A DNA stretch of 64,000 nucleotides, taken from positions 325,859-389,858 of the forward strand of contig SMSO01000006.1 of assembly GCA_004764695.1 (NCBI GenBank), read 5' to 3'. Of the stretch, positions 25,514 to 37,266 are shown one piece after another. The position numbers and the translations under genes were made by a program. Below the pieces are notes generated by a model. That model did not search any database and was not told the origin of the DNA. It worked only from the letters and a program-made list of their open reading frames with translations. Positions within the stretch are counted from its first letter, which is position 1. The number at the start of each line of letters is the position of its first letter. The DNA is from Schizochytrium sp. TIO01. Lineage: Eukaryota; Protista; Bigyra: Labyrinthulomycetes.

Positions 25514-28036
25514 CTCCGCCTTTATAAATCTCTCGTTTTTCCCACATAGAAATTGGTAGCACCCAGCTACGCTCTACACTAGCCCCGGGCTCTCTAGGGG
25601 CCCCTAGAAGATAAGCTATGGATCCCTCAACAATACTATTCCTCCTCCTTTTTCTCGTTGAGCTTGTTGTTCTTCTGCTAATATCTATGACCACTGGAGA
25701 CTACTGCTATCGTTTGTGGTATATACCTGGTAGAGTCGAGCGAGGCTAGTTGCGGCGTGAGGAGGTCAAATAAATATCTTACTTCGCCCTTCGAGGAGAG
25801 ACCATTCCATTCGACAAATCGCTGCTTTGCGATGACTTCGGGCGGCCGGGTGGAGAATCCTTGGGATGAGAGCTTCAACTTTAGAGCTTCGAAGCATGGG
25901 TAGAATCTGGGCGAACGTATGTGCGTGGAAATTGTCATAATAAAATGGCGATGGGGAATTTGACGTGCGTGAACTATTGCGATCATGGCAATCTGCAGTC
26001 GAATGTAATTTGGGAGCATGTGACCATGCACTGGGTTCGATGAAGAGGATGATGACTGGAATATACATGCACATGAACGTCAGATTAGGTCAAGAGCATT
26101 GGGCTGTGAAGGTTCTTACTTGCGAAGCTGTATGTGTGAATTCCCCAATCTGAACGAATAGCAAGCTAACTCAAAGCGGGACCCAAAAGTCGCTTATAGT
26201 TCATCAGGTGACTGTGTTTTTCATTAAAGATAGTAGCATCGTTCTGCGGCAGATTTACTTGATAACATACCAGTACTAGGCACAGTTTCCGAATAAACAT
26301 GTTTGCCTCTGACCTTTTTTTAAAGGTGTAAATGTTAAGGTAAACCACATCAAATCGAGACTCGAGCCTTCGAAAGCCCACTATGGTATATGGTATGGGC
26401 CACACACACTTCAGCTAGGCTTCAACAGTAAAACCGAGGTTCTCTGGGACATCAAAGTTCTATAAAGTTTTGCTTGTCTGACCCTATACAGAGTATCCCA
26501 ATACTCCAAGTTTAATTTCAGCGTAGCACCTTTCTGTGCATATCTGCGCATACTACGTTAGCATCGAAGCACCAAGAGCCGCCATTTGCTTCATTCAAAC
26601 TGAAGACGCATGTTATTAATTTAAAGCAAAATGGTGTTTCTACCCTTTGATTTCTTTAAACCTCCTTTCTCCAATAGCCTAAAATTCATCTGCGTACCCA
26701 AGCCTCCAGTATTCTCATCCTGCAAGAGTCTATGTTTCTCTCTGCCGTCTCCGAGTGTCCTTGGCTGCTACACACAAGAGCAGGGTCGCCTGGCTAGCCG
26801 CGGACGCTCTGTGGTGAGGTCTCGTTAGCGGGACTTTATCTCGTGCATTTACCCTTTCTTCCCAAATTCTAGTTTTCATGATTTTCTTCCGTTCCGCTTT
26901 CGGGAGCTTACCTTTGGACCACTTCAACTTCTCTCAAGCTCAAGTCATCTACCTACTTCAAGCTCAAGTTCAACTTCGCCTCTCATCGCAGAAGCTGCTC
27001 AAGAGACATAGACATGAACGAAGCATTCCCGGTCCTGAGCAAGTGAGTACTACGAACAAGAGCTGGAAAAACGAGAGACGAATGTAATGCAGGCCATTGA
27101 AAATGTTTTACAACATGTAAATGCAATTCAACGTAATGTAGTGCAATTCAGTATGATACCATACAATGCAATGCAATGCAATGCAAGACTGACCTGAAGG
27201 CCTTGAGCAAAAGAACGTACTGCAGGAACCACGGCGAACTTCTGGCTTCGATGCAACTCTGTTTGCCCGCTTCTGTGTGGTCCATACATTCAGCTGCCGC
27301 AATCTTCGCTCGAGCTACGCGACCTTTGGTATGCGAGCACCACGTTGACCTACAATCAATCTTGAGTTTTGGGAATCAATAAATTGCGTTGATAAATTCA
27401 TAATCTTTGAACAAATTCGTGAGCGGCCCAAGAAAGCGGAAGAAATGAGAAGAAATGAGTGTAATACATGGGCCTATGCAATAAGCTAGAAGAGCATAAG
27501 GCTGGCAGCCAGTAACAGTGGATAGGACAGGGATAGGATCACTGGCACGTCCTTAGACATCTTCAGAACAAGAGTGGCTTAGAAACCATAAAAGCTGGTC
27601 GGTTTTATCTAAAACTGTGCAGCTGCTAGCTCCTGGGCCAGCAGAGCAGCTGCAAAATCGTATGCTGCAGCTAACACATCCCTCTGCGGCCATCGAACAA
27701 AGAATTGCGTATAGTTAGTTTCCTGACTTCCAAAGGTTCTTATTATGGTAAGGATGGCTGTTTGTTTTGCTAGAATCAATGAAGTGAAATAACTACAAGT
27801 GAACAATAGGCCCAACAAGTGAAGTATTTTTCGAATATAGAAGTCTACCTACATGAGCAAAGTAGAGCAAACTCAGGGAAGTGAAACAAATATGAAAAGT
27901 CAAGCAAGCCAAAAGTAAATGAAAAGCACTGCAGACTTGCAACGCGTCCGCAGCGTCGCTGCCCAACCCTCTGCTTCTCCTCTCGCCGTTTGTGCGAGCT
28001 TATAGCCACCAATTTAGTCAGTCGGCGTCAGGAGCA

Positions 28037-29293
28037 ATGCTAGCAGCTCTTGCCACGCGGCGTCTGGCCCCTGGCCTTCGCCCGCGTCCCGGCGCAGCCT
28101 CACTTGCAGCGGCCTCAATGCGGCGGCTGGCAGCAGCGCCGAGGACCCTCGCGGTGACGGCGACGCCCGCAGCAAAAACTGTGAGCCCACCCTTGGGAAC
28201 AAGCGGTGTGAACTCAACCGTCATGCGCGACCGTGGGGTAGGATATTGGCTTTTGGGCACATCTGCGGCAGTCTTCGGCATGGTGGTCTTGGGCGGCGTA
28301 ACTCGGTTGACAAGGTCCGGACTGTCCATGGTAGACTGGCGGCCCCAGGGATCTATGTTGCCGAAAGATGATGCTGCTTGGACTATTGAGTTTGAGAAGT
28401 ACAAACAGTTCCCGGAGTACAAGCGTATGAACCAGGGCATGACGCTCGAGGAGTTCAAGTACATTTACTTTATGGAATGGTTTCACCGCATGTGGGGCCG
28501 TGGCCTTGGTGTAGTCTTCGGACTGCCGTTTATGTACTTCATGGCCCGCGGTCGTATCCAGAAGTTGCCCGGAATGACTCCTAAGCTCTTTGGTCTGCTG
28601 GCTCTCGGTGGCGGCCAGGGTCTCGTGGGTTGGTGGATGGTTAAGAGTGGCCTTGAGGAGCCCGCCCATGACTGGAAGGAGCCCCGCGTGAGCCCATACC
28701 GCCTGGCAGCTCACTTGACTGTGGCTCTGGGTGTTTTCACTGGCCTTGTGTGGACTGGACTCACTGCTCTCAACCCCCAGCCCCTCTTGGCCACTGCTGT
28801 GGACCCGAAGATCCTCAAGTTCCGCAAGTGGGGCGCTGGAGTCCTCGCGCTCGTTGGTGTGACTTTCGTCTCGGGCGCCTTTGTCGCTGGAAACGATGCT
28901 GGACGCGCTTACAATGATTGGCCACTCTACGCTGGAGACTGGATCCCCAAGGAAATTTGGGACAACACCCTCGAGCCGGCCTGGCGCAACATCTTTGAGA
29001 ACACCGGTACCGTCCAATTTGACCACCGTAACCTCGCCTACACCACATTCCTCTCCACTATGGCTCTCTTCCATATCGCACGTCGCCAGGCTAACTGGAA
29101 GCTTCTCAGCCCTTCTATGAAGAACGGCTACCGTGCTATGGTGATCGTTGTAACTTGCCAGGTCCTCCTCGGTATCTCCACACTCATGATGTTTGTCCCT
29201 GTCTCTCTTGGCTCTGCTCACCAGGCTGGTGCTCTTACCTTGTGGACTGCGATGCTCTACTCTCAGCACTCTCTCAGGTATTTGCGTCTTTAA
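28037..29293 (+). CDS. COX15: Heme A synthase COX15, with mitochondrial presequence
   Basis: GGVTRLTRSGLSMVDW, EFEKYKQFPEY, EWFHRMWGR, GWWMVKSGL, PRVSPYRLAAHL, GAFVAGNDAG, QFDHR and SAHQ (four His ligands). The N-terminus from ATG 28037 is R/A-rich and lacks acidic residues. Confidence 0.97.
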   Translation: MLAALATRRLAPGLRPRPGAASLAAASMRRLAAAPRTLAVTATPAAKTVSPPLGTSGVNSTVMRDRGVGYWLLGTSAAVFGMVVLGGVTRLTRSGLSMVDWRPQGSMLPKDDAAWTIEFEKYKQFPEYKRMNQGMTLEEFKYIYFMEWFHRMWGRGLGVVFGLPFMYFMARGRIQKLPGMTPKLFGLLALGGGQGLVGWWMVKSGLEEPAHDWKEPRVSPYRLAAHLTVALGVFTGLVWTGLTALNPQPLLATAVDPKILKFRKWGAGVLALVGVTFVSGAFVAGNDAGRAYNDWPLYAGDWIPKEIWDNTLEPAWRNIFENTGTVQFDHRNLAYTTFLSTMALFHIARRQANWKLLSPSMKNGYRAMVIVVTCQVLLGISTLMMFVPVSLGSAHQAGALTLWTAMLYSQHSLRYLRL

Positions 29294-30472
29294 AAAGCTT
29301 TGCGCCTTTACCTAATTTCGAATAGGACAAGCTTGATGAATGTCAGGCTAACAAGAGAATAAACCCTCATCATTCTCATGTCTGGCACCATCGTATCTTC
29401 CTTTTCTTTCTTGTGCAACCGTAAATGATATGACCTTACCATACACAAGATATCAATCGACAAATATTACAACATCAAACAAAGTCAAAGAGTTGTCAAC
29501 CAGTCACATCATTCCCAGCGAATGTGACAGCACTTTTAATTCAAAAATCACCTCACATCATTGCTCTAAACTTCGATGCGCGTAGTGATGGCCTCGCGTA
29601 TAGCTACCCTAGTCCTTGCTTGCACATGTTAGTTTACAAATCAATCATAAATCATGCCTTTGTCTGTCACACAGCATCCATCGTACTTGTTTCCCTTGTC
29701 TAACGTCAGAAAAGGTAACCGACGCGAGTCGTAATCTCGCACGAGTTGACAGTACTACCTACCGACGTTGCTCTGCTGCGAGAAATTTGATCATTTCGTT
29801 TTACATCACCAAATGTCGAATTTCCCAAACTTGTATCTGGAATATGGTAGGTTTGACGAGTCCATATCTTGTCCAACACCGTCAACGGCTTCAATATGTA
29901 GCGATATAGCATTCGATTATTTTCACATTTTGACCCGGGCAGCTTATCTTCCATGAACGTTGTGGTTCGCTACATTGCTTCGCTTGAAGTTGCACAACTT
30001 GATCTCATCTTTTTCTAAAACGAAGAAGATTGAGAAAGTCGGACTTGCCACCTTTTGCACTGCTCTAATGATAGTTAGTGTAGTCTTACTTTTATACTGC
30101 CCGAGCGGGAGCATTTGACATTCGTTTCGTGCTGGCCTGAGTACGGTGCCTACTACCACCAGCCCACTCGCTTTGTGGGGCGGCTTGATTCAAGGTATAA
30201 CTTTTAAAATGAATCGAGGCTCCTACGAATCCTTTATCTTGCAATTCTATAAGTAGATAACTAGCCTCTTCCTACTGTTTCTAAGTAATTTAGATTTTAG
30301 ACGATTGTGAAGAATCATGATCACATCAGTCTAGGCTAGGCATTTGCTGACTTCAAACCTCATTCGTTCGAACAGCGTTCACTGTAGGCGCTTTCGCGGT
30401 AGCGAACACCCCGCCGAAGTCAAATTCTCTTTGCATCAGTTTAAAAACACAGTCTGTCACAAGAGAGACGAG

Positions 30473-32617
30473 ATGAGCTTAGCAGAGGTTCTCGAGCAGT
30501 GGCCTGAGGATGTTATGGGCGCAGTGCCTACAGCTGGGAGCTTGCCAGAAGGATTCCAGGCCCTCAGCGAGGACTCTGTCGAGTCTTTCTTGGTCGCAAG
30601 GCATGCAAATCTTGTCGCAGACTTCCTTGGAGGCTTGGTAACGAGTGTGCGGGAAATCTCAGATGGGAACCTGAACCATGTTTTTGAGGTAACAGGCAAG
30701 GATGGGAAACGTATTTGTGTCAAACAGGCGCTTCCGTTCATGCGGATGAACGAGGATATTAAGATGGCAGCCCAGCGCATCTACTTTGAGAACGCCTCCC
30801 TGCGTATATTCAGCCACGTCGCAGCCGAAGAGAGAACAAAAATTGTTCCTGATATTTACGCTTTTGACAAAGACATGATGGTGGTGATCATGGAATTCGT
30901 TGCACCACACCAGGTGCTTCGATCCTTGCTTGTAAACGGGTTTGAAACAAAAGGCCTTGGTTCGGCTGTTGGTAGATCGCTAGCTAGGATTTTGTTCGCC
31001 ACCTCAATATATGGTCTCGAGGGACCGCACCGCCGACGATTAATGAATTATTTTGCGCAAAACAACGACCTCTGTGTTGCAACTGAAGAAGCCGTATTCA
31101 CTTCTCCTCTGGTTGACAAACCTAGTTTCACCAGTCGGTGGACCTCTCCTGCCCTTGATGAAATTGTCACAGAGCTACGCGCAGATAAGGAAGTTCTCCT
31201 CGCTGTGGCGGACCTCAAGACAAAGTTCAGCTCTCAGGCAGACTGTCTTCTTCATGGCGATACCCATACAGGGTCTATTCTTGCAAATCCAGAATCGCAA
31301 GACCTTGCAGAGGCTGGTGGGTCTGTTCTGTTCATTGATTCAGAATTCACCCTCATGGGACCCATTGCTTTTGACGTAGGTTCGTTCATGGGAAATTTAG
31401 TGATTTCTGCGTGCGCTCGCCGCTCAGTATACCCTTTAACTGAACTACAAGAATTCTGGCAAGCCTTTGCACAGACTTTCAAGGATATGTGGACTCGATC
31501 AAGAAAAGAATTTCTTGCATCTCTCGAGAATTCTCCTGAAAGACTCGAGACAGGGCGCATCAGTGTATATTTTAGAAAAGAAGTTGATGTAGATGCTTCG
31601 CAAGCTCTCAAAACCTTCTTCCGTGACCTTTGGTTTGATGCTGTAGGCTTCGCAGCTGTTGAACTGATTCGCCGTACAATAGGTGTGGCCCATGTAGAAG
31701 ACTTTGAATCAATTAGAGACATTGAAGAACGAGCTTATTCCGAATCGACTGCATTGAAGATTGCACAAACACTTTTGCATGATCGACGAAGTGAACAACA
31801 GATAAAAAATCCTGAGGACCTTTTAGCACTCTGCAAATTGAAGCTTGGCCTCCAACCTGCTGTTGTGACCAAAACTGCAACAATTTTTCTTGTTGCCCGG
31901 CTTCCGCGTCTCGGAAGTTGCAAGACTCGACTGGCGAGCACGATTGGAAATGAAGCAGCGCTTGATTTTGCGCAGGCGTGCATTGGAGATCTGATCGAAA
32001 GTCTTGGAGACTCAGCTCTCGAGGAATCTCTGCAAGCTAACATACAAAGAGTCATACTTTTTAGTCCCGGAGAAGATAAACAGGACTACCGTACTTGGCT
32101 CGATGCTGCTTTCCCAAAGCATGGCCCACGCTGGGAGCTACAGTCAATGTCAACACAACAAGGAGAACCAGACGTACGTCTTGGTAAACTAGGAAACGCC
32201 TTAGGAGGGTCACTTCAGAGGTGTCACTCAGATGCTGTTGCATTTATTGGAATGGACACTCCAAACCTTGGTATCAATGAGCTATCTAAGGCTCTTGCTA
32301 TTCCCCTCGCTGAACCCTCCAAGGCTTTTCTCTCACCTGCTCTCGATGGAGGCTATGTACTTTTGGCACTACCTGGGCATTGTGGCAAGGAAGCTTTCTG
32401 GGACGTTGCATGGTCAACTGGAGCTGCATTTGCTACGCAGCTCAATGCACTAACGGAATGCGGGCTTCGAGTTACGATAGGAAAAAAAGTTTTTCGTGAT
32501 GTAGATGAGGAAGATGACTATCTGGCTCTTGCGAAAGATCTCAAAGAGAACCAGACCTATTCTTGTGAACGTTTGCGAAATCACTTCACCAGTCATTGCA
32601 CAAGTATCAGTTCGTGA
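30473..32617 (+). CDS. Fusion: 5-methylthioribose kinase (MtnK)-like domain + DUF2064/TIGR04282 (CofC-like, GT-A fold) domain
   Basis: Kinase: EISDGNLNHVF, VKQALP, HGDTHTGS, IDSEF, GPIAFDVG, RRTIGVAHVEDFESI. C-terminal domain from ~31874: VARLPRLGSCKTRLA, FIGMDTPNL, PALDGGYVLLAL, FWDVAWST, RDVDEEDD. One uninterrupted ORF; first ATG at 30473. Confidence 0.88.
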   Translation: MSLAEVLEQWPEDVMGAVPTAGSLPEGFQALSEDSVESFLVARHANLVADFLGGLVTSVREISDGNLNHVFEVTGKDGKRICVKQALPFMRMNEDIKMAAQRIYFENASLRIFSHVAAEERTKIVPDIYAFDKDMMVVIMEFVAPHQVLRSLLVNGFETKGLGSAVGRSLARILFATSIYGLEGPHRRRLMNYFAQNNDLCVATEEAVFTSPLVDKPSFTSRWTSPALDEIVTELRADKEVLLAVADLKTKFSSQADCLLHGDTHTGSILANPESQDLAEAGGSVLFIDSEFTLMGPIAFDVGSFMGNLVISACARRSVYPLTELQEFWQAFAQTFKDMWTRSRKEFLASLENSPERLETGRISVYFRKEVDVDASQALKTFFRDLWFDAVGFAAVELIRRTIGVAHVEDFESIRDIEERAYSESTALKIAQTLLHDRRSEQQIKNPEDLLALCKLKLGLQPAVVTKTATIFLVARLPRLGSCKTRLASTIGNEAALDFAQACIGDLIESLGDSALEESLQANIQRVILFSPGEDKQDYRTWLDAAFPKHGPRWELQSMSTQQGEPDVRLGKLGNALGGSLQRCHSDAVAFIGMDTPNLGINELSKALAIPLAEPSKAFLSPALDGGYVLLALPGHCGKEAFWDVAWSTGAAFATQLNALTECGLRVTIGKKVFRDVDEEDDYLALAKDLKENQTYSCERLRNHFTSHCTSISS

Positions 32618-33561
32618 TGCGAGCCCTGTCTTTACAAGGAATACATAAGCTGTATCTTACCTCACCACGTACAACCTCGTCTCAAAGAAAAGTTAAATCT
32701 AAAATGTAGGAAACATAACAGATCATCAACGGTTTGCGTTTCAAGTAGCTTGGGAAAGAGTTAAGATAGAATGAAGAAACAACTAAACATTGGCAACAAG
32801 TAGAGAGCAATAATACTCCTATTCTCAAATCAGGCCGAAGCTTAGGCCTTTAAATCATAATAACAATATTATTGTTCTCTTTTTTATTCTGTTTTTTAAA
32901 TGACACAGGTCAATAACTACATTATCGTCAGGCTAATACGTGAGACATGACGATCAACTCGAGGTGATTTTGGCTTTAATGCTACTTATCATCCTCTTGC
33001 TTCTGTGCAGGAGCAGTCATGAACCAAAAAACAAAGCATAGCATGGGATGAATTGCAAAGAAGAAGGCTGGACCAAGAAGCGACTACCTCAAGAGCCTCT
33101 GATAAAAATGATCATGAGACAGTTTGACGGAATGGTTTCCAAAGTAAAGAACCACGAAGTATATGAAAGTGGAAGAGAAAGCTTATGCAAACCACTGTTA
33201 GCAATGGTTTTATTATTGCAATCGACGGCAAGAATAACCGATTTTAAAAGAAAACAATCAAAAGACAAAATATTAAAATAACTACAACAACAGAAACAGT
33301 GATTGACGGGCGCAGCCATACCAATACACACTAGAGACAGTACAACCACTTAAACACAGACAGTGTGTTGAACATGTTTTGTTTGCTGAAACCTTGCAAT
33401 TGTGGGCTGGAGTAGAAGAATATAAGCATTTCCTCGAAGCTCAAGTAACAATTCTATCATACAAAAACAAATTTTAGGATTCCATGACACAGAACAACTG
33501 TGTATAATCAATAGACAATAGACCCGTTCCATAAGTTTTGCTGCCTGCAAGAGTTGACAGA

Positions 33562-36500
33562 TTATACATTTGCCTCTGATCCAGTGCGAGCGAGAGCATC
33601 GGGGTGAGTAGAAACATCGGGGTGAGTGGATGCATCCTTCTTGTTGTATTTGCAAGCTTCAGCATAAATCTGCATAGAATCAGGCATAAAAAGCTGTGTG
33701 TAGTTCTTGAGAACGAGTTGCGGCAAAACAGAGGCAAAAATGGCTAGGAAAGAAGTGAGCCAGAAAAACCAAGTTGGGCCTATATAAAAAAGAATGTAGC
33801 CATTATCAGTCTGCGCAGGGCTGAAACTCGCGTTAATGTAAACGTGCGCGAGCCCAAAGATTGCCAGAATAAAGATTGCAAATCCGATGAAAGACAAAAC
33901 TACGTGGCACCATGTAAATGCATGAAAACGCAACATCAATGATACCATAATGCTCATGACAATTACAAAAGTAACCGCTGTTCCCTCACTCCATAAATCA
34001 GCAGCAATGCCATTCCTATTCCATGTCATACCAAACGCAAAGCCAGCGACCATTGACCAGGCTGCCATCCAGACAGCTTGGCAGGTCTCGACAAAAAATT
34101 CCCGAAGTCCGAAGTCCACATTGTAAGGGTCATAAAACTCAGGGTGACTCACCAGCGCATCCACAGGAAGCTTACGATCAAACATAGCAATGGCCATGAG
34201 AAATGGAGATGTCATAACTGCGTTGAAAAATGTTAACACATAATTTACCTCGATGGTTTGTCCCGAGTACGCACTGACAAAACCATAGGCAATCTGTGGC
34301 AAATTAAAGGCAATATTAACTCCTAGAGAAGCACGTGCCGCATTGACAATTCGCAGCCTTGCGCCAGCGCCATGTACAAACAAAAGACGTTTGAGATCTG
34401 CAAATTTATGAATCGCAAAGTCTGAGGCATTTACAGCCTGAGAGCCCTCCTTACCGAAAATGCCAACGCCAACATCAGCCTCACGAATCATGGACACATC
34501 ATTAGCACCATCACCAATTGATAGTGTAATCTTATTAAAATTCGCACGCACCAGTTTTGTCACGGAGGCTTTTTGATGAGGAGTCATACGTGTGCATACC
34601 GTAGTATAGCACTTATTCATGACAAGAGCGAGAAGTTTGGAGAGTTCAGGGTCACGAAGGCAGATGCGCAGGCACTCGCCAGAGAGAACAAGCGCATCGA
34701 GACCTGTTGAGCGTTTGCTTGTCTGGCTCTCTAGTGTACTCAGATCATTTGCAGTGTTTTGGTCGTCATCGGAAACACCACTAGGATGGCCTACAGGGTT
34801 CGAGAGCAATGCGTTTTCCAAGTCCACCCGGATCGTCGATTCGAGGGAGTCTGTGATAATATGAAACGTGCTTCCTGGCCTAAATAGACCACACGTGGTG
34901 CAGATGCTCATTGCTGTTTCAGTCTTATCACCAGTCAAAACAGCCACCTGAATGCCGGCCTTGATGAGACTTTGCAGAGCGTCTTCAACACCTTCTGACA
35001 GTTTATCTTCGACACCTGTGCATCCCACAGGGCGCAACATACCTTCAAGTAGCTCAAACGCAGTGCCAATCTGTTCATCACGAGATGTCATAGAGACCTG
35101 GGCTTCCTGATATTCACTTTCGAACTGCAAAAATAGTTCACTTGTCACGTCAATTTCGCTGGAACCCATGACCAATGTGCGCAAACCCAATTTTGAGAGA
35201 TCGTGGACTTGTTTGTTGAGAGACGTAAGGTCGAAGCGCTCTCCAAATAGTTCATTCATAACGTTGTCAGCTCCCTTGTACCAGATGAGAGCCTTTTGGC
35301 TCACAGGTTTTCCTGAAGATATGGACTCTTCCTGAAGTATGATACCCATTCGCTTCCTAGAGGAGTTAAAGGGAAGAAGGGCAAGAATTCTGTATTGGCG
35401 TAGAACACCCTCTGCCTCAAGCTGTAAGCTACCAGGGCTTCGATTTTTTAACACAAAACCCAAGTCTCGCGCAGTCAAAGCTAAGGCGACTTCATCTGGA
35501 GACTCACCGGAATACGTCAGCTCCGGACCCTTAGACCGCCTGTTGGAGTCCTCAGTGACACCCCCAATGTCCTCCTCAAGCTCCACTTCCACAGTGTTGC
35601 ACGCTGCCATGATTTTCACCAAAGTGACAAGGTCTGTATCCTGAGATGCTCGGGAAGCGCTTGCCGGAAGAACACGCTTTTGGGACCCATTTCTGCTCCG
35701 AAGTGCGCCACTATCATCAATCTCATATATGCCCTTGTTCGTGGAGCAATGCGAAAATCTCATTTCGTTGTCTGTCAGTGTACCTGTTTTGTCGCTGAGA
35801 ACATACTCGACGCTCCCAAGCTCCTCAACGAGACTAGTTGTATTCGCAATCGCAGGGCGGTTCAAACCATCCCTGGAATACATGGCCTTATCCCAGTAAA
35901 TGTACAAGCCACCCACTAACTTGCCACCAATTTCAAGGATAACATAGAGGGCCATGGGCACTAAGTAACTCATGAGGATAAACCAGGTCATGAAAGCAAA
36001 GATCCATTCTTTCCCATTGGTACTTGAAGCAATGTCCCAACCGTATTGGTCTCGGAAGAGGGGCATCTTGCTGACCTCAAGACTTGCCATGACAATGCAA
36101 AGAATTGTTTGCACCACGATGATCAGGAGAATAGTGACGTTCATTTTTCTTTCCAGATGGCTAAACTTGAATTGCGGGAGCTGCTGATTCATCCGCAATT
36201 TTGTGGTCTTGCCAGCACCGACAATCACGCCCCAAGCTTGCTTAGTGTTTCGAAGAGTCGCACCACGTAATATCATATTCTCTCGCTGAAGTGCAACGGC
36301 AGAAGAATCATTTGGGTCCTCCGCGTCCATCCGACCGCTGAAAACCTCGAGGTACGGATTCGGGGCATCTGCGGTAATAACTGTTTTCACAGCAGTTAGG
36401 TCCTTCTGAGTGGGTTGCTCACCTCGCTGTAAATCATTCAGAAACGGGCGCAGGTCAACTGCACGGCGGACCTTTAGCCTCGTTTCACCATCGAGGTTAG

Positions 36501-37266
36501 CTGTGTCAACCCAGCACACCGGGCTTCCCGCACTTGATGAGCCTGGTAGGTGCTCCACAGAGAGAACCACGATATCGGCTGGACAGACTTCGTCGCGCCC
36601 GACCGCAATAATTTCACCAACACGAAGCTCTCGACTTTTCACAGTCTCACTGCTGCCATCGCTCGTTAATCGCATCACTTTGGCATTATTGACATGTGCA
36701 TCTGACACGTGCCTCAAATAGTCTTCATAACCCTCCTTGATGGCCACCACGCCAAGAATGAACACAAGCGGGGCTACGGTAATATACACAGGAAATGGTG
36801 AAACATCTGGCACAAATTGCAGCGCCGTGATGAAGATGAAGTACGAGTTGGCTACTCGCCTTGCCTGTTCAAATAGGTTCTTTGGCAAAAATGTGATAAT
36901 GTTATACCTCGAAGTAATAAACAAATTTGCTGGTGATCCAGCGTTGAGCTCTGCGTTATTTAGATGCACCACAAGATCCTCCTCTAGAGGAATCGCCGCA
37001 TTTGGGGCAGAATTTGAATCATCTCCAGTATCCACGCTGTTATTCTGATTTCTCTTCGAAGAAGATGTCCGCAATGATTTGGGGAGGAACTTCTGGAACA
37101 CGCGTGCCCTGCGGAAGCGTCTTGGTAGAGGGTCTTGCCGCACTGGATGCGATGACGACCACCTAACCAGGGAAGGCCGTGATGGCGGCAAGTCGGCCTC
37201 GGTCACAGAGTCCTCGCCCTCTTCCCGAACCACGAATGGCTGCACAGTTCCGCTGCTTCGCGTCAT
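33562..37266 (-). CDS. P4-type ATPase (phospholipid flippase)
   Basis: TSRYNIITFLPKNLFEQ, LDGET, EELG…SDKTGTLTDNEM, ESPDEVAL, FNSSRKRM, GLRTL, LTGDKTETA, GDGANDVSMI, GKEGSQA; TM segments at both ends. Confidence 0.96.
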   Translation of the reverse strand: MTRSSGTVQPFVVREEGEDSVTEADLPPSRPSLVRWSSSHPVRQDPLPRRFRRARVFQKFLPKSLRTSSSKRNQNNSVDTGDDSNSAPNAAIPLEEDLVVHLNNAELNAGSPANLFITSRYNIITFLPKNLFEQARRVANSYFIFITALQFVPDVSPFPVYITVAPLVFILGVVAIKEGYEDYLRHVSDAHVNNAKVMRLTSDGSSETVKSRELRVGEIIAVGRDEVCPADIVVLSVEHLPGSSSAGSPVCWVDTANLDGETRLKVRRAVDLRPFLNDLQRGEQPTQKDLTAVKTVITADAPNPYLEVFSGRMDAEDPNDSSAVALQRENMILRGATLRNTKQAWGVIVGAGKTTKLRMNQQLPQFKFSHLERKMNVTILLIIVVQTILCIVMASLEVSKMPLFRDQYGWDIASSTNGKEWIFAFMTWFILMSYLVPMALYVILEIGGKLVGGLYIYWDKAMYSRDGLNRPAIANTTSLVEELGSVEYVLSDKTGTLTDNEMRFSHCSTNKGIYEIDDSGALRSRNGSQKRVLPASASRASQDTDLVTLVKIMAACNTVEVELEEDIGGVTEDSNRRSKGPELTYSGESPDEVALALTARDLGFVLKNRSPGSLQLEAEGVLRQYRILALLPFNSSRKRMGIILQEESISSGKPVSQKALIWYKGADNVMNELFGERFDLTSLNKQVHDLSKLGLRTLVMGSSEIDVTSELFLQFESEYQEAQVSMTSRDEQIGTAFELLEGMLRPVGCTGVEDKLSEGVEDALQSLIKAGIQVAVLTGDKTETAMSICTTCGLFRPGSTFHIITDSLESTIRVDLENALLSNPVGHPSGVSDDDQNTANDLSTLESQTSKRSTGLDALVLSGECLRICLRDPELSKLLALVMNKCYTTVCTRMTPHQKASVTKLVRANFNKITLSIGDGANDVSMIREADVGVGIFGKEGSQAVNASDFAIHKFADLKRLLFVHGAGARLRIVNAARASLGVNIAFNLPQIAYGFVSAYSGQTIEVNYVLTFFNAVMTSPFLMAIAMFDRKLPVDALVSHPEFYDPYNVDFGLREFFVETCQAVWMAAWSMVAGFAFGMTWNRNGIAADLWSEGTAVTFVIVMSIMVSLMLRFHAFTWCHVVLSFIGFAIFILAIFGLAHVYINASFSPAQTDNGYILFYIGPTWFFWLTSFLAIFASVLPQLVLKNYTQLFMPDSMQIYAEACKYNKKDASTHPDVSTHPDALARTGSEANV

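Follow-up and report, generated by a model that had tools for sequence, protein, structure and literature searches.

A labyrinthulomycete protein that joins 5-methylthioribose kinase to a TIGR04282/DUF2064 domain: a candidate two-step activator of 5-substituted ribose in arsenosugar synthesis

What is the function of a protein in which a 5-methylthioribose kinase (MtnK) is joined, in one chain, to a TIGR04282/DUF2064 domain? The question is raised by a gene near the middle of a 64,000-nucleotide stretch (hereafter the window) of contig SMSO01000006.1 from the thraustochytrid Schizochytrium sp. TIO01 (Labyrinthulomycetes). An uninterrupted frame without internal stop runs from 30344 to 32617 on its plus strand, and the first in-frame ATG, at 30473, opens a coding sequence (CDS) for 714 amino acids plus stop. 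An original prediction, made from the letters alone, had seen in this open reading frame (ORF) a kinase joined to a DUF2064 domain and a possible two-step activator of an unusual 5-substituted ribose, with arsenosugar synthesis as the candidate pathway. Both families are indeed matched within the single frame, and every motif that had been named (DGNLN, HGDxH, DxE, RRxxG, KTRL, IGMDTP, DGGYxL, W-S-T and DVD) can be located in the translation, WST at residues 647-649 and the others as given in Table 1. Of the readings weighed below, activation of a ribose for arsenosugar synthesis is the best supported, all computational checks of that interpretation having been favourable.

The N-terminal half scores 319.8 bits against the NCBIfam MTRK model TIGR01767, over profile positions 2-395 of 401 and above the equivalog cut-off of 275, so that the kinase assignment is upheld. 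Pfam places an APH domain at residues 59-306 (E 9e-8), and PDB sequence searches with this half find the MTK of Arabidopsis thaliana (PDB identifier 2pyw, E 6.8e-66) and the MtnK of Bacillus subtilis (PDB identifier 2olc). The C-terminal half finds the DUF2064 structure 3cgx in the PDB, and it matches Pfam DUF2064 at residues 522-649 with 44.3 bits, above the gathering score of 25.8, and TIGR04282 over profile positions 2-188 of 189 with 87.6 bits (E 8.5e-25). The predicted family of the second half stands with Pfam and falls short of the curated TIGR04282 cut-off of 134 bits, but the scores of both halves greatly exceed what chance would give. In a genome-wide profile search of the 64-Mb, 37-contig assembly, the fusion gene was the sole match to TIGR01767 and the sole match to TIGR04282.

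The two domains are transcribed together as far as public data can tell. The sequencing runs available consist of contigs, with no raw reads and no record of them as RNA, and these contigs behave like transcripts. A single contig of 2464-2510 nt covers the whole gene in each of the runs X6 (30315-32805), X3 (30325-32834) and X9 (30315-32778), which represent three strains, and the independent contigs across the junction derive from no fewer than three strains and studies; neither joints nor introns were seen in the contigs that span the fusion gene. The stretch 32900-33187 has no coverage in any run, 29732-30307 has none in X1, X3 and X6, and depth differs several-fold between the fusion gene and its two neighbours. 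The strain differences listed within the ORF, 15 synonymous and 8 non-synonymous, are spread over both domains. An exhaustive HMMER search with the C-terminal domain recovered the same two-domain architecture in five further 50%-identity clusters, namely those of Hondaea fermentalgiana (GBG34165.1), Mucochytrium quahogii (a 676-aa ORF of transcriptome MMETSP0098) and three from metagenome or Logan assemblies (P0044, P0078 and P0150), among which the C-terminal domains are only 34-61% identical. The Hondaea gene model is 1330 aa long and includes about 690 C-terminal residues without explanation. A metagenome scan with the fusion alignment returned canonical MtnK loci only and zero fusions, and a word-based search with the C-terminal domain alone gave nine matches with little taxonomy. 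The architecture thus recurs in other protists, and the two separate transcripts or assembly join that could have undone the prediction find no support. Because other clusters share the architecture and single contigs span the gene, an assembly join can in practice be dismissed, and we regard the fusion as an expressed gene with near certainty.

When aligned with the MtnKs of plants and bacteria, the kinase domain is seen to retain the Asn of the G-loop, the Asp of HGD, the DxE motif with the Phe that follows it, and the RR motif. In the A. thaliana structure 5-methylthioribose (MTR) is bound as the alpha-anomer, with W76, V184 and V370 capping the 5-methylthio group, and bulky 5-substituted analogues are still substrates (PMC2194712). 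Canonical enzymes have W, then V/L/M, then mostly V/L/I at these positions, and the labyrinthulomycete clade has I/F/M, A and V (I, A, V in this protein; F, A, V in Hondaea and Mucochytrium), so that the canonical cap is not reproduced, though the W76 column is less certain than the rest of the alignment. A pocket with more room around the 5-substituent would suit a larger group, but since the W-loop is only semi-conserved we take it as weak evidence. In a tree of kinase domains from quick searches, supported by the Shimodaira-Hasegawa-like approximate likelihood ratio test (SH-aLRT) only, this protein groups with Hondaea, Mucochytrium and P0044 in one clade (91-99%) within the canonical MtnK radiation; P0078 and P0150 lie nearby without firm placement, and the fusion may have arisen once or more than once. 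From the conserved catalytic motifs we infer that the domain phosphorylates C1 of a 5-substituted ribose. Another fusion of consecutive methionine-salvage steps was met among the database matches, in which MtnA (PF01008) is joined to MtnK (P0008, P0009 and P0010; 814-858 aa, from Logan assemblies), the kinases clustering with plant MtnKs.

The AlphaFold model of the C-terminal domain has a predicted local distance difference test (pLDDT) score of 94.3 and a predicted template modelling (pTM) score of 0.91. The first Foldseek match in the PDB is 3cgx (E 4.3e-15, TM 0.72/0.79), followed by the CofC/FbiD structures 7p97, 6bwg/6bwh and 2i5e and then by KdsB, RmlA, IspD, GlmU and UDP-glucose pyrophosphorylase. 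In an alignment of 64 sequences, which takes in bacterial proteins encoded beside ArsS, residues K484, R486, D595, D625-G-G, D676 and D678 (fusion numbering) are invariant. The profile of this alignment matches 3cgx (E 2e-51) and also FbiD, 7p97 and CofC by sequence, pairing KTRL with AAKTRL/AKSRL, GMD(T/S)P with GDLP, and DVD with CDVDTPADL. The FbiD residues that pair with the three invariant Asp, D116, D188 and D190 once the numbering of the 6bwg chain is corrected for its 14-residue tag, hold the phosphate of phosphoenolpyruvate (PEP) via two Mg2+ ions (PMC6450877). The likeness of the DUF2064 fold to the CofC guanylyltransferase, on which the prediction had drawn, is thus borne out by its Foldseek neighbours and FbiD-like aspartates. 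Because fold and catalytic residues match those of FbiD, we read the domain as a phospho-substrate nucleotidyltransferase; the modelled fold and catalytic set would befit the coupling of a phosphate ester with a nucleoside triphosphate (NTP), and it is moderately probable that it acts in this way on the product of the kinase. With CofC and FbiD, which are guanylyltransferases for 2-phospho-L-lactate, PEP or 3-phosphoglycerate, the domain shares the MobA-like fold, the K-T/S-R-L motif and the D...DxD triad. There is a further parallel in that FbiD showed zero activity without FbiA (PMC6450877) and a partner transferase often adjoins or is fused to TIGR04282. However, the domain is not a member of that family, as the fusion protein has no match to TIGR03552 (CofC) and its relatives reach 27-32 bits against a cut-off of 105, and the presumed substrate is a sugar-1-phosphate rather than a three-carbon acid phosphate.

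Bacterial gene neighbourhoods point to what that substrate may be. We compared 80 bacterial loci anchored on ArsS, with 10-kb flanks (L028-L107), in which neighbour counts derive partly from hidden Markov models built on the retrieved sequences and key loci were verified with NCBIfam. DUF2064 lies near ArsS in 32 of the 80 loci, a TIGR04283-like glycosyltransferase (GT) in 30, ArsM in about 32 and 5'-methylthioadenosine (MTA) phosphorylase (MTAP) in 10. MTAP is less than 3 kb from ArsS in all ten of these loci and on the same strand in nine, most commonly in the order ArsS-(ArsM)-MTAP-GT-DUF2064, and about 0.42 such loci would be expected by chance (p 3e-11). NCBIfam confirms the GT and DUF2064 ORFs of the operon as TIGR04283 and TIGR04282; six of the eight operon MTAPs scanned reach 285-333 bits with TIGR01694 (cut-off 274.85) and the other two 263 and 271, and three of the five genomes checked have no MTAP gene besides the one in the operon. 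Further recurrent neighbours of ArsS are an NF004991-type flavin adenine dinucleotide (FAD) disulfide reductase (22 loci), an OlsE-like fatty-acid hydroxylase (18), a PitA-like phosphate transporter (6) and TIGR04169. Two apparent fusion proteins, ArsS-MTAP (L043) and ArsS-DUF2064 (L078), were rejected when a frame check resolved each into adjacent genes in different frames.

The same association is seen at the level of whole genomes. Among 301 Verrucomicrobiota genomes, TIGR04282 is found in 31 and ArsS in 15, and not one of the 15 with ArsS lacks TIGR04282 (Fisher p 4e-17); the bacterial co-occurrence of TIGR04282 with ArsS and TIGR04283, which the prediction had invoked, is therefore reproduced in the loci as well as in the genomes. 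Nine of the 16 TIGR04282-positive genomes without ArsS encode TIGR04282-TIGR04283 fusions (in L204, the sole one scanned, both halves are above cut-off), an arrangement that suggests consecutive steps. These fusions are often beside the same FAD reductase and three of them have ArsM 6-7 kb away, and because of such neighbours the arsenic association reaches beyond ArsS-positive genomes. One such fusion gene, in a Verrucomicrobiota genome without recognisable ArsS, adjoins a 1051-aa frame (L209:9691-12843, minus strand) that combines a radical S-adenosylmethionine (SAM) part, an ArsM-type methyltransferase (210 bits) and an MbdU-like metal-binding part, and that may be an alternative to ArsS. 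A Planctomycetaceae genome of 9.9 Mb (G307) has three ArsS genes, each directly adjoining its own DUF2064 paralogue (Table 1).

MTAP and MtnK are two known ways to a 5-substituted ribose-1-phosphate; the substrate of MTAP is MTA, of which the product of ArsS is an analogue. Because MTAP stands in the bacterial operon and MtnK is fused to the domain in protists, two independent lines lead to the view that a 5-substituted ribose-1-phosphate is the likely substrate of TIGR04282.

The genome of TIO01 also encodes candidates for the partner enzymes that the prediction had associated with this chemistry. ArsS, on contig 34, is a 469-aa ORF with an N-terminal hydrophobic anchor and scores 409 bits with TIGR04167 (cut-off 300). 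A membrane-anchored family 2 glycosyltransferase (GT2) of 353 aa on contig 24 (G000 C24:990994-991800) has TIGR04283 as its best family with 134 bits (cut-off 182), the next family reaching 39 bits. An ArsM-like gene lies on the contig of the fusion, 35 kb off and beyond the window end (G000 C5:393567-395062; L016:782-2277, minus strand); its best family is NF008823 (139.9 bits) and it has the cysteine motifs YYGCG, NACC and SNCVINLCPDK, but it seems to be broken into two ORF pieces, probably with an intron between them, and the second of these matches no family. The chance of finding any of the three partner genes within 35 kb of the fusion is p ~0.003. ArsS homologues are present in Hondaea (69% identity) and Mucochytrium (63%) and also in brown algae, green algae and cryptophytes. 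Two others, annotated in animals, the sea cucumber Apostichopus japonicus and the copepod Oithona nana (P0316 and P0317; 45-50% identity), may be genuine animal genes or contamination.

ArsS adenosylates trivalent dimethylarsenic, DMAs(III), to 5'-deoxy-5'-dimethylarsinoyl-adenosine (PMC13598754), and PMC12159101 credits Cheng et al. 2021 with the same adenosylation. A review assigns the later steps to a hypothetical adenosyl nucleosidase and then to glycoside formation (PMC10456119). In the literature searched we found no mention of DUF2064, and a search combining arsenosugars with glycosyltransferases gave nothing relevant.

We propose that the fusion is a cytosolic bifunctional enzyme acting between ArsS and the GT2. 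ArsM would provide DMAs(III), ArsS would turn it into 5'-deoxy-5'-dimethylarsinoyl-adenosine, and adenine would then be removed. The MtnK domain, with ATP, would place a phosphate onto the anomeric C1-OH of a 5-substituted alpha-D-ribofuranose, whose likeliest 5-substituent is dimethylarsinoyl, and the 5-substituted ribose-1-phosphate would be handed to the fused TIGR04282 domain, acting as a MobA/CofC-type nucleotidyltransferase and not as a glycosyltransferase. There, D595, D676 and D678 would grip the sugar phosphate via two Mg2+ ions as in FbiD, and the sugar phosphate would attack an NTP (GTP by analogy) to yield a nucleoside diphosphate (NDP)-5-substituted ribose and pyrophosphate, as fold and conserved residues suggest. 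The membrane-anchored TIGR04283-like GT2 would finally move the activated arseno-ribose onto a glycerol or lipid acceptor. In bacteria, the operon-encoded MTAP would make the same ribose-1-phosphate in place of the kinase. Arsenosugars are beta-ribosides, and because GT2 enzymes invert configuration, an alpha-donor would give such products. A labile 1-linked NDP-ribofuranose would perhaps also explain, by analogy with FbiD/FbiA, why the enzymes of activation and of transfer are so frequently fused or adjacent.

We would put the organoarsenic character of the pathway at slightly better than an even chance. The full proposal, from kinase through nucleotidyltransferase to arsenosugar, in which the enzymatic activities, the identity of the 5-substituent and the origin of the free sugar are all inferred, comes out a little short of even. 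More tentative again is the generalisation that TIGR04282 proteins are nucleotidyltransferases that convert 5-deoxy-5-dimethylarsinoyl-alpha-D-ribose-1-phosphate to a 1-linked NDP-ribofuranose, that TIGR04283 GT2 enzymes make beta-arsenoribosides from it, and that thraustochytrids make arsenosugars de novo.

The proposal can be set beside known systems. L-fucokinase/GDP-fucose pyrophosphorylase takes a salvaged sugar to a glycosyl donor with its anomeric kinase and its nucleotidyltransferase on a single chain; the logic is the same but the families are unrelated (a GHMP kinase and another nucleotidyltransferase versus the protein-kinase-like MtnK and a CofC-like domain), and the comparison is an analogy only. 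Bacterial ArsS-(ArsM)-MTAP-TIGR04283-TIGR04282 operons (L028, L038 and L060) hold the same activities except for the step that forms ribose-1-phosphate, and they are the basis for the order of the pathway; their MTAP would act on the nucleoside, whereas in the protist the kinase would act on the free sugar and the genes are spread over four contigs. The kinase is like MtnK (2pyw and 2olc) in its score, its motifs and its nesting among canonical enzymes, and unlike it in the fused second enzyme, in the two of three cap residues that are smaller (W76->I, V184->A) and in the lack of an MTA nucleosidase match in the genome. Likewise, the C-terminal domain resembles TIGR04282/DUF2064 (3cgx) in being its full-profile best match, in the invariant residues and fold, and in the ArsS and TIGR04283-like GT of the genome, but it is under the cut-off, belongs to a sister clade of the ArsS-locus proteins, is fused to a kinase, and is read here as having a chemistry different from its family name.

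Several observations weigh against the arsenosugar proposal. The TIGR04282 score is below the curated cut-off, as are those of proteins from ArsS-ArsM-MTAP operons themselves (113.8, 121 and 123 bits). A quick tree of the DUF2064 domain has two clades with 99% SH-aLRT each, a split that is partly a sampling effect: one holds 25 of 25 bacterial ArsS-locus proteins, with a tight MTAP-operon subclade, and its sister contains the six fusions together with three standalone proteins found in marine eukaryote transcriptomes and the top database matches without known context, so that the fusion C-domain may not be orthologous with the ArsS-operon proteins. Close relatives of this domain (31-37% identity) occur in six of 301 Planctomycetota genomes, and in none of the six does ArsS or a GT adjoin them; their neighbours include a SAM methyltransferase upstream in two and an APH-family kinase 2 kb away in one. 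Furthermore, 16 of the 31 TIGR04282-positive Verrucomicrobiota genomes are without recognisable ArsS, and no match to TIGR04169, a peroxidase-like protein associated with arsenosugars, turned up in the TIO01 genome. We know of no precedent for a 1-linked NDP-ribofuranose donor, and the literature search found no paper on arsenosugars or arsenic compounds in thraustochytrids.

The link of a kinase to ArsS in bacteria is also thin. In a Verrucomicrobiae operon (L071), a GT (184 bits), an MtnK-like kinase and a minus-strand ORF precede ArsS, with TIGR04282 (170 bits) divergent upstream; the kinase reaches 119 bits with TIGR01767 and matches no other family. A related kinase lies 5 kb from ArsS in a Bacteriovoracia locus (L028), and the two are 43% identical across phyla, which is not decisive. 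These ArsS-linked kinases amount to two loci of a very divergent MtnK-like clade, the six homologues of the L071 kinase in the 301 Verrucomicrobiota genomes are nowhere near arsenosugar genes, and in a control set of 80 canonical bacterial MtnK loci none has arsenosugar-type neighbours.

Methionine salvage adds further counter-evidence. The fusion is the sole MtnK of a genome that encodes MtnA (387 bits), and ordinary salvage is thus possible. No match to the MTA nucleosidase family TIGR01704, which could supply the kinase with free sugar, was found in the genome; apart from a purine nucleoside phosphorylase and a uridine phosphorylase, PNP_UDP_1 is represented there only by an MTAP-like domain that is fused to a deaminase, and one IU-type nucleoside hydrolase is encoded. 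The fused MTAP-like domain is part of a 748-aa ORF (G000 C34:3207149-3209395; L026:1650-3896, minus strand) that combines a TIGR01694 MTAP/MTIP-like half (168 bits) with a TRZ/ATZ-family deaminase half (NF006549, 571 bits, above cut-off). From its sequence this looks like a kinase-free route to MTR-1-phosphate through MTA deaminase and methylthioinosine phosphorylase, and because of it the kinase is not obviously required for salvage; the same enzyme could supply ribose-1-phosphates without any kinase. As to a separate MtnK or MTA phosphorylase, which the prediction had left to be looked for, there is no second TIGR01767 match, and an MTAP-like domain does exist, fused to the deaminase.

The alternative that survives best keeps the chemistry and changes the sugar: a non-arsenic by-product of SAM metabolism, 5-methylthioribose or 5-deoxyribose, would be made into an NDP-5-thio- or NDP-5-deoxy-ribose, to be built into a glycoside or disposed of, and ArsS would have no part in it. 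By its score the kinase is an equivalog MtnK, and MtnK-family kinases are reported to use 5-deoxyribose as a substrate too (PMC6079011). The separate C-domain clade, the Planctomycetota relatives away from ArsS and the ArsS-less half of the TIGR04282-positive genomes all fit this alternative. Moreover, DUF2064 is fused elsewhere to a MazG pyrophosphohydrolase, a CoaC-like flavoprotein, ankyrin or an AAA ATPase (P0049, P0158, P0051, P0113, P0136, P0132 and P0163), because of which its roles probably reach beyond arsenosugars. Against it stand the ArsS, ArsM-like and TIGR04283-like genes of this genome and the ArsS of Hondaea and Mucochytrium, the presence of ArsS in five of the six Planctomycetota genomes that encode the nearest bacterial relatives of the C-domain (81 of 301 in the background; p 0.006), the ArsS-less TIGR04282 loci that lie near the same FAD reductase and in some cases near ArsM, and the enlarged pocket for the 5-substituent. 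We consider this alternative unlikely, though it is the one to be taken most seriously.

A second possibility stays within an arsenosugar pathway but has TIGR04282 itself as a transferase that uses ribose-1-phosphate as donor, or as another step, with no NDP-sugar formed. The names speak for it, as NCBIfam labels TIGR04282 an 'arsenosugar biosynthesis glycosyltransferase' and the depositors of 3cgx called it a putative nucleotide-diphospho-sugar transferase, and GT-A and nucleotidyltransferase folds are related, with glycosyltransferases lower in the Foldseek list. However, the top 34 structural neighbours past 3cgx are nucleotidyltransferases, the first true glycosyltransferase being ArnC at rank 35, and the K-x-R motif and set of three Asp are those of FbiD. 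In addition, a separate TIGR04283 GT2 is a near-constant partner, often fused to TIGR04282, and because it accompanies TIGR04282 two glycosyl transfers are not needed. We therefore rate a direct transferase as rather improbable, and the word 'glycosyltransferase' in the public family name is probably wrong as to the chemistry.

Third, the protein could be the ordinary MtnK of methionine salvage, its DUF2064 domain being regulatory or unrelated to the kinase product, as its nesting among canonical plant and bacterial MtnKs and the salvage genes described above would allow. Nevertheless, the genome has no MTA nucleosidase match to account for a supply of MTR and does have a phosphorylase-type route to MTR-1-phosphate, while the C-domain retains all catalytic residues of its family under purifying selection and the fusion is kept across clusters that have diverged widely in that domain; an ordinary role appears to us distinctly improbable. 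Finally, an artefact that joined two genes deserves almost no credence, since, even if the Hondaea model and some other public gene models are probably over-merged, the two domains here share one frame, contigs cross the junction and end at the gene borders, and the Mucochytrium transcriptome ORF holds the same pair.

In marine algae, arsenic occurs mainly as arsenosugars, which are also a route of dietary exposure. In the arsenosugar proposal, the protist fusion and the bacterial in-operon MTAP would converge on 5-arseno-ribose-1-phosphate, with TIGR04282 as the nucleotidyltransferase that follows. If true, it would complete the arsenosugar pathway after ArsS, in an order that could be tested with four recombinant proteins, and it would add a sugar nucleotide of a new kind, a 1-linked NDP-ribofuranose. 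Heterotrophic thraustochytrids, including relatives of the strains used for docosahexaenoic acid (DHA) oil, would then make arsenosugars or arsenosugar lipids de novo, which flags these sources of food-grade oils as possible organoarsenic producers.

Table 1. Positions of the fusion gene, its domains and motifs in the window, with the ArsS-DUF2064 sites of genome G307
Feature	Residues	Position	Strand	Basis
MtnK-TIGR04282 fusion CDS, stop included		30473..32617	+	ORF, Pfam, NCBIfam
Transcript-like contig, approximate extent; 5' leader ~158 nt, 3' trailer ~190 nt		30315..32805	+	
MtnK (5-methylthioribose kinase) domain	29-446	30557..31810	+	TIGR01767, PDB 2pyw
G-loop DGNLN, nucleotide positioning	64-68	30662..30676	+	motif defined in PMC2194712
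HGDTH catalytic loop; Asp polarises ribose O1	261-265	31253..31267	+	PMC2194712
IDSEF; Mg-binding DxE and substrate-contacting Phe	288-292	31334..31348	+	PMC2194712
RR motif RRTIG, binds ribose substrate	400-404	31670..31684	+	PMC2194712
Linker between NCBIfam envelopes of the two domains	~25 residues	31811..31885	+	
TIGR04282/DUF2064 domain, CofC-like nucleotidyltransferase fold	472-682	31886..32518	+	Pfam, NCBIfam, AlphaFold, Foldseek
KTRL; K484, R486 invariant; aligns with FbiD AAKTRL, CofC AKSRL	484-487	31922..31933	+	
IGMDTP; D595 invariant, aligns with FbiD D116	592-597	32246..32263	+	
DGGYVL; D625-G-G family-invariant	625-630	32345..32362	+	
DVD; D676, D678 invariant = FbiD D188, D190 (Mg2+/phosphate anchor)	676-678	32498..32506	+	
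ArsS-DUF2064 sites of genome G307		C130:18540-20197; C14:73622-75282; C5:95223-96902		

The fusion gene is flanked in the window by two intronless ORFs, neither of which has an obvious link to it. Upstream, the ORF at 27992-29293 on the plus strand looks by eye like a COX15-type heme A synthase. Downstream, the ORF at 33562-37266 on the minus strand looks by eye like a P4-type (DKTGTLT) phospholipid-transporting ATPase, and the 3' end of its mRNA is marked by a loose poly-T end at position 33258.

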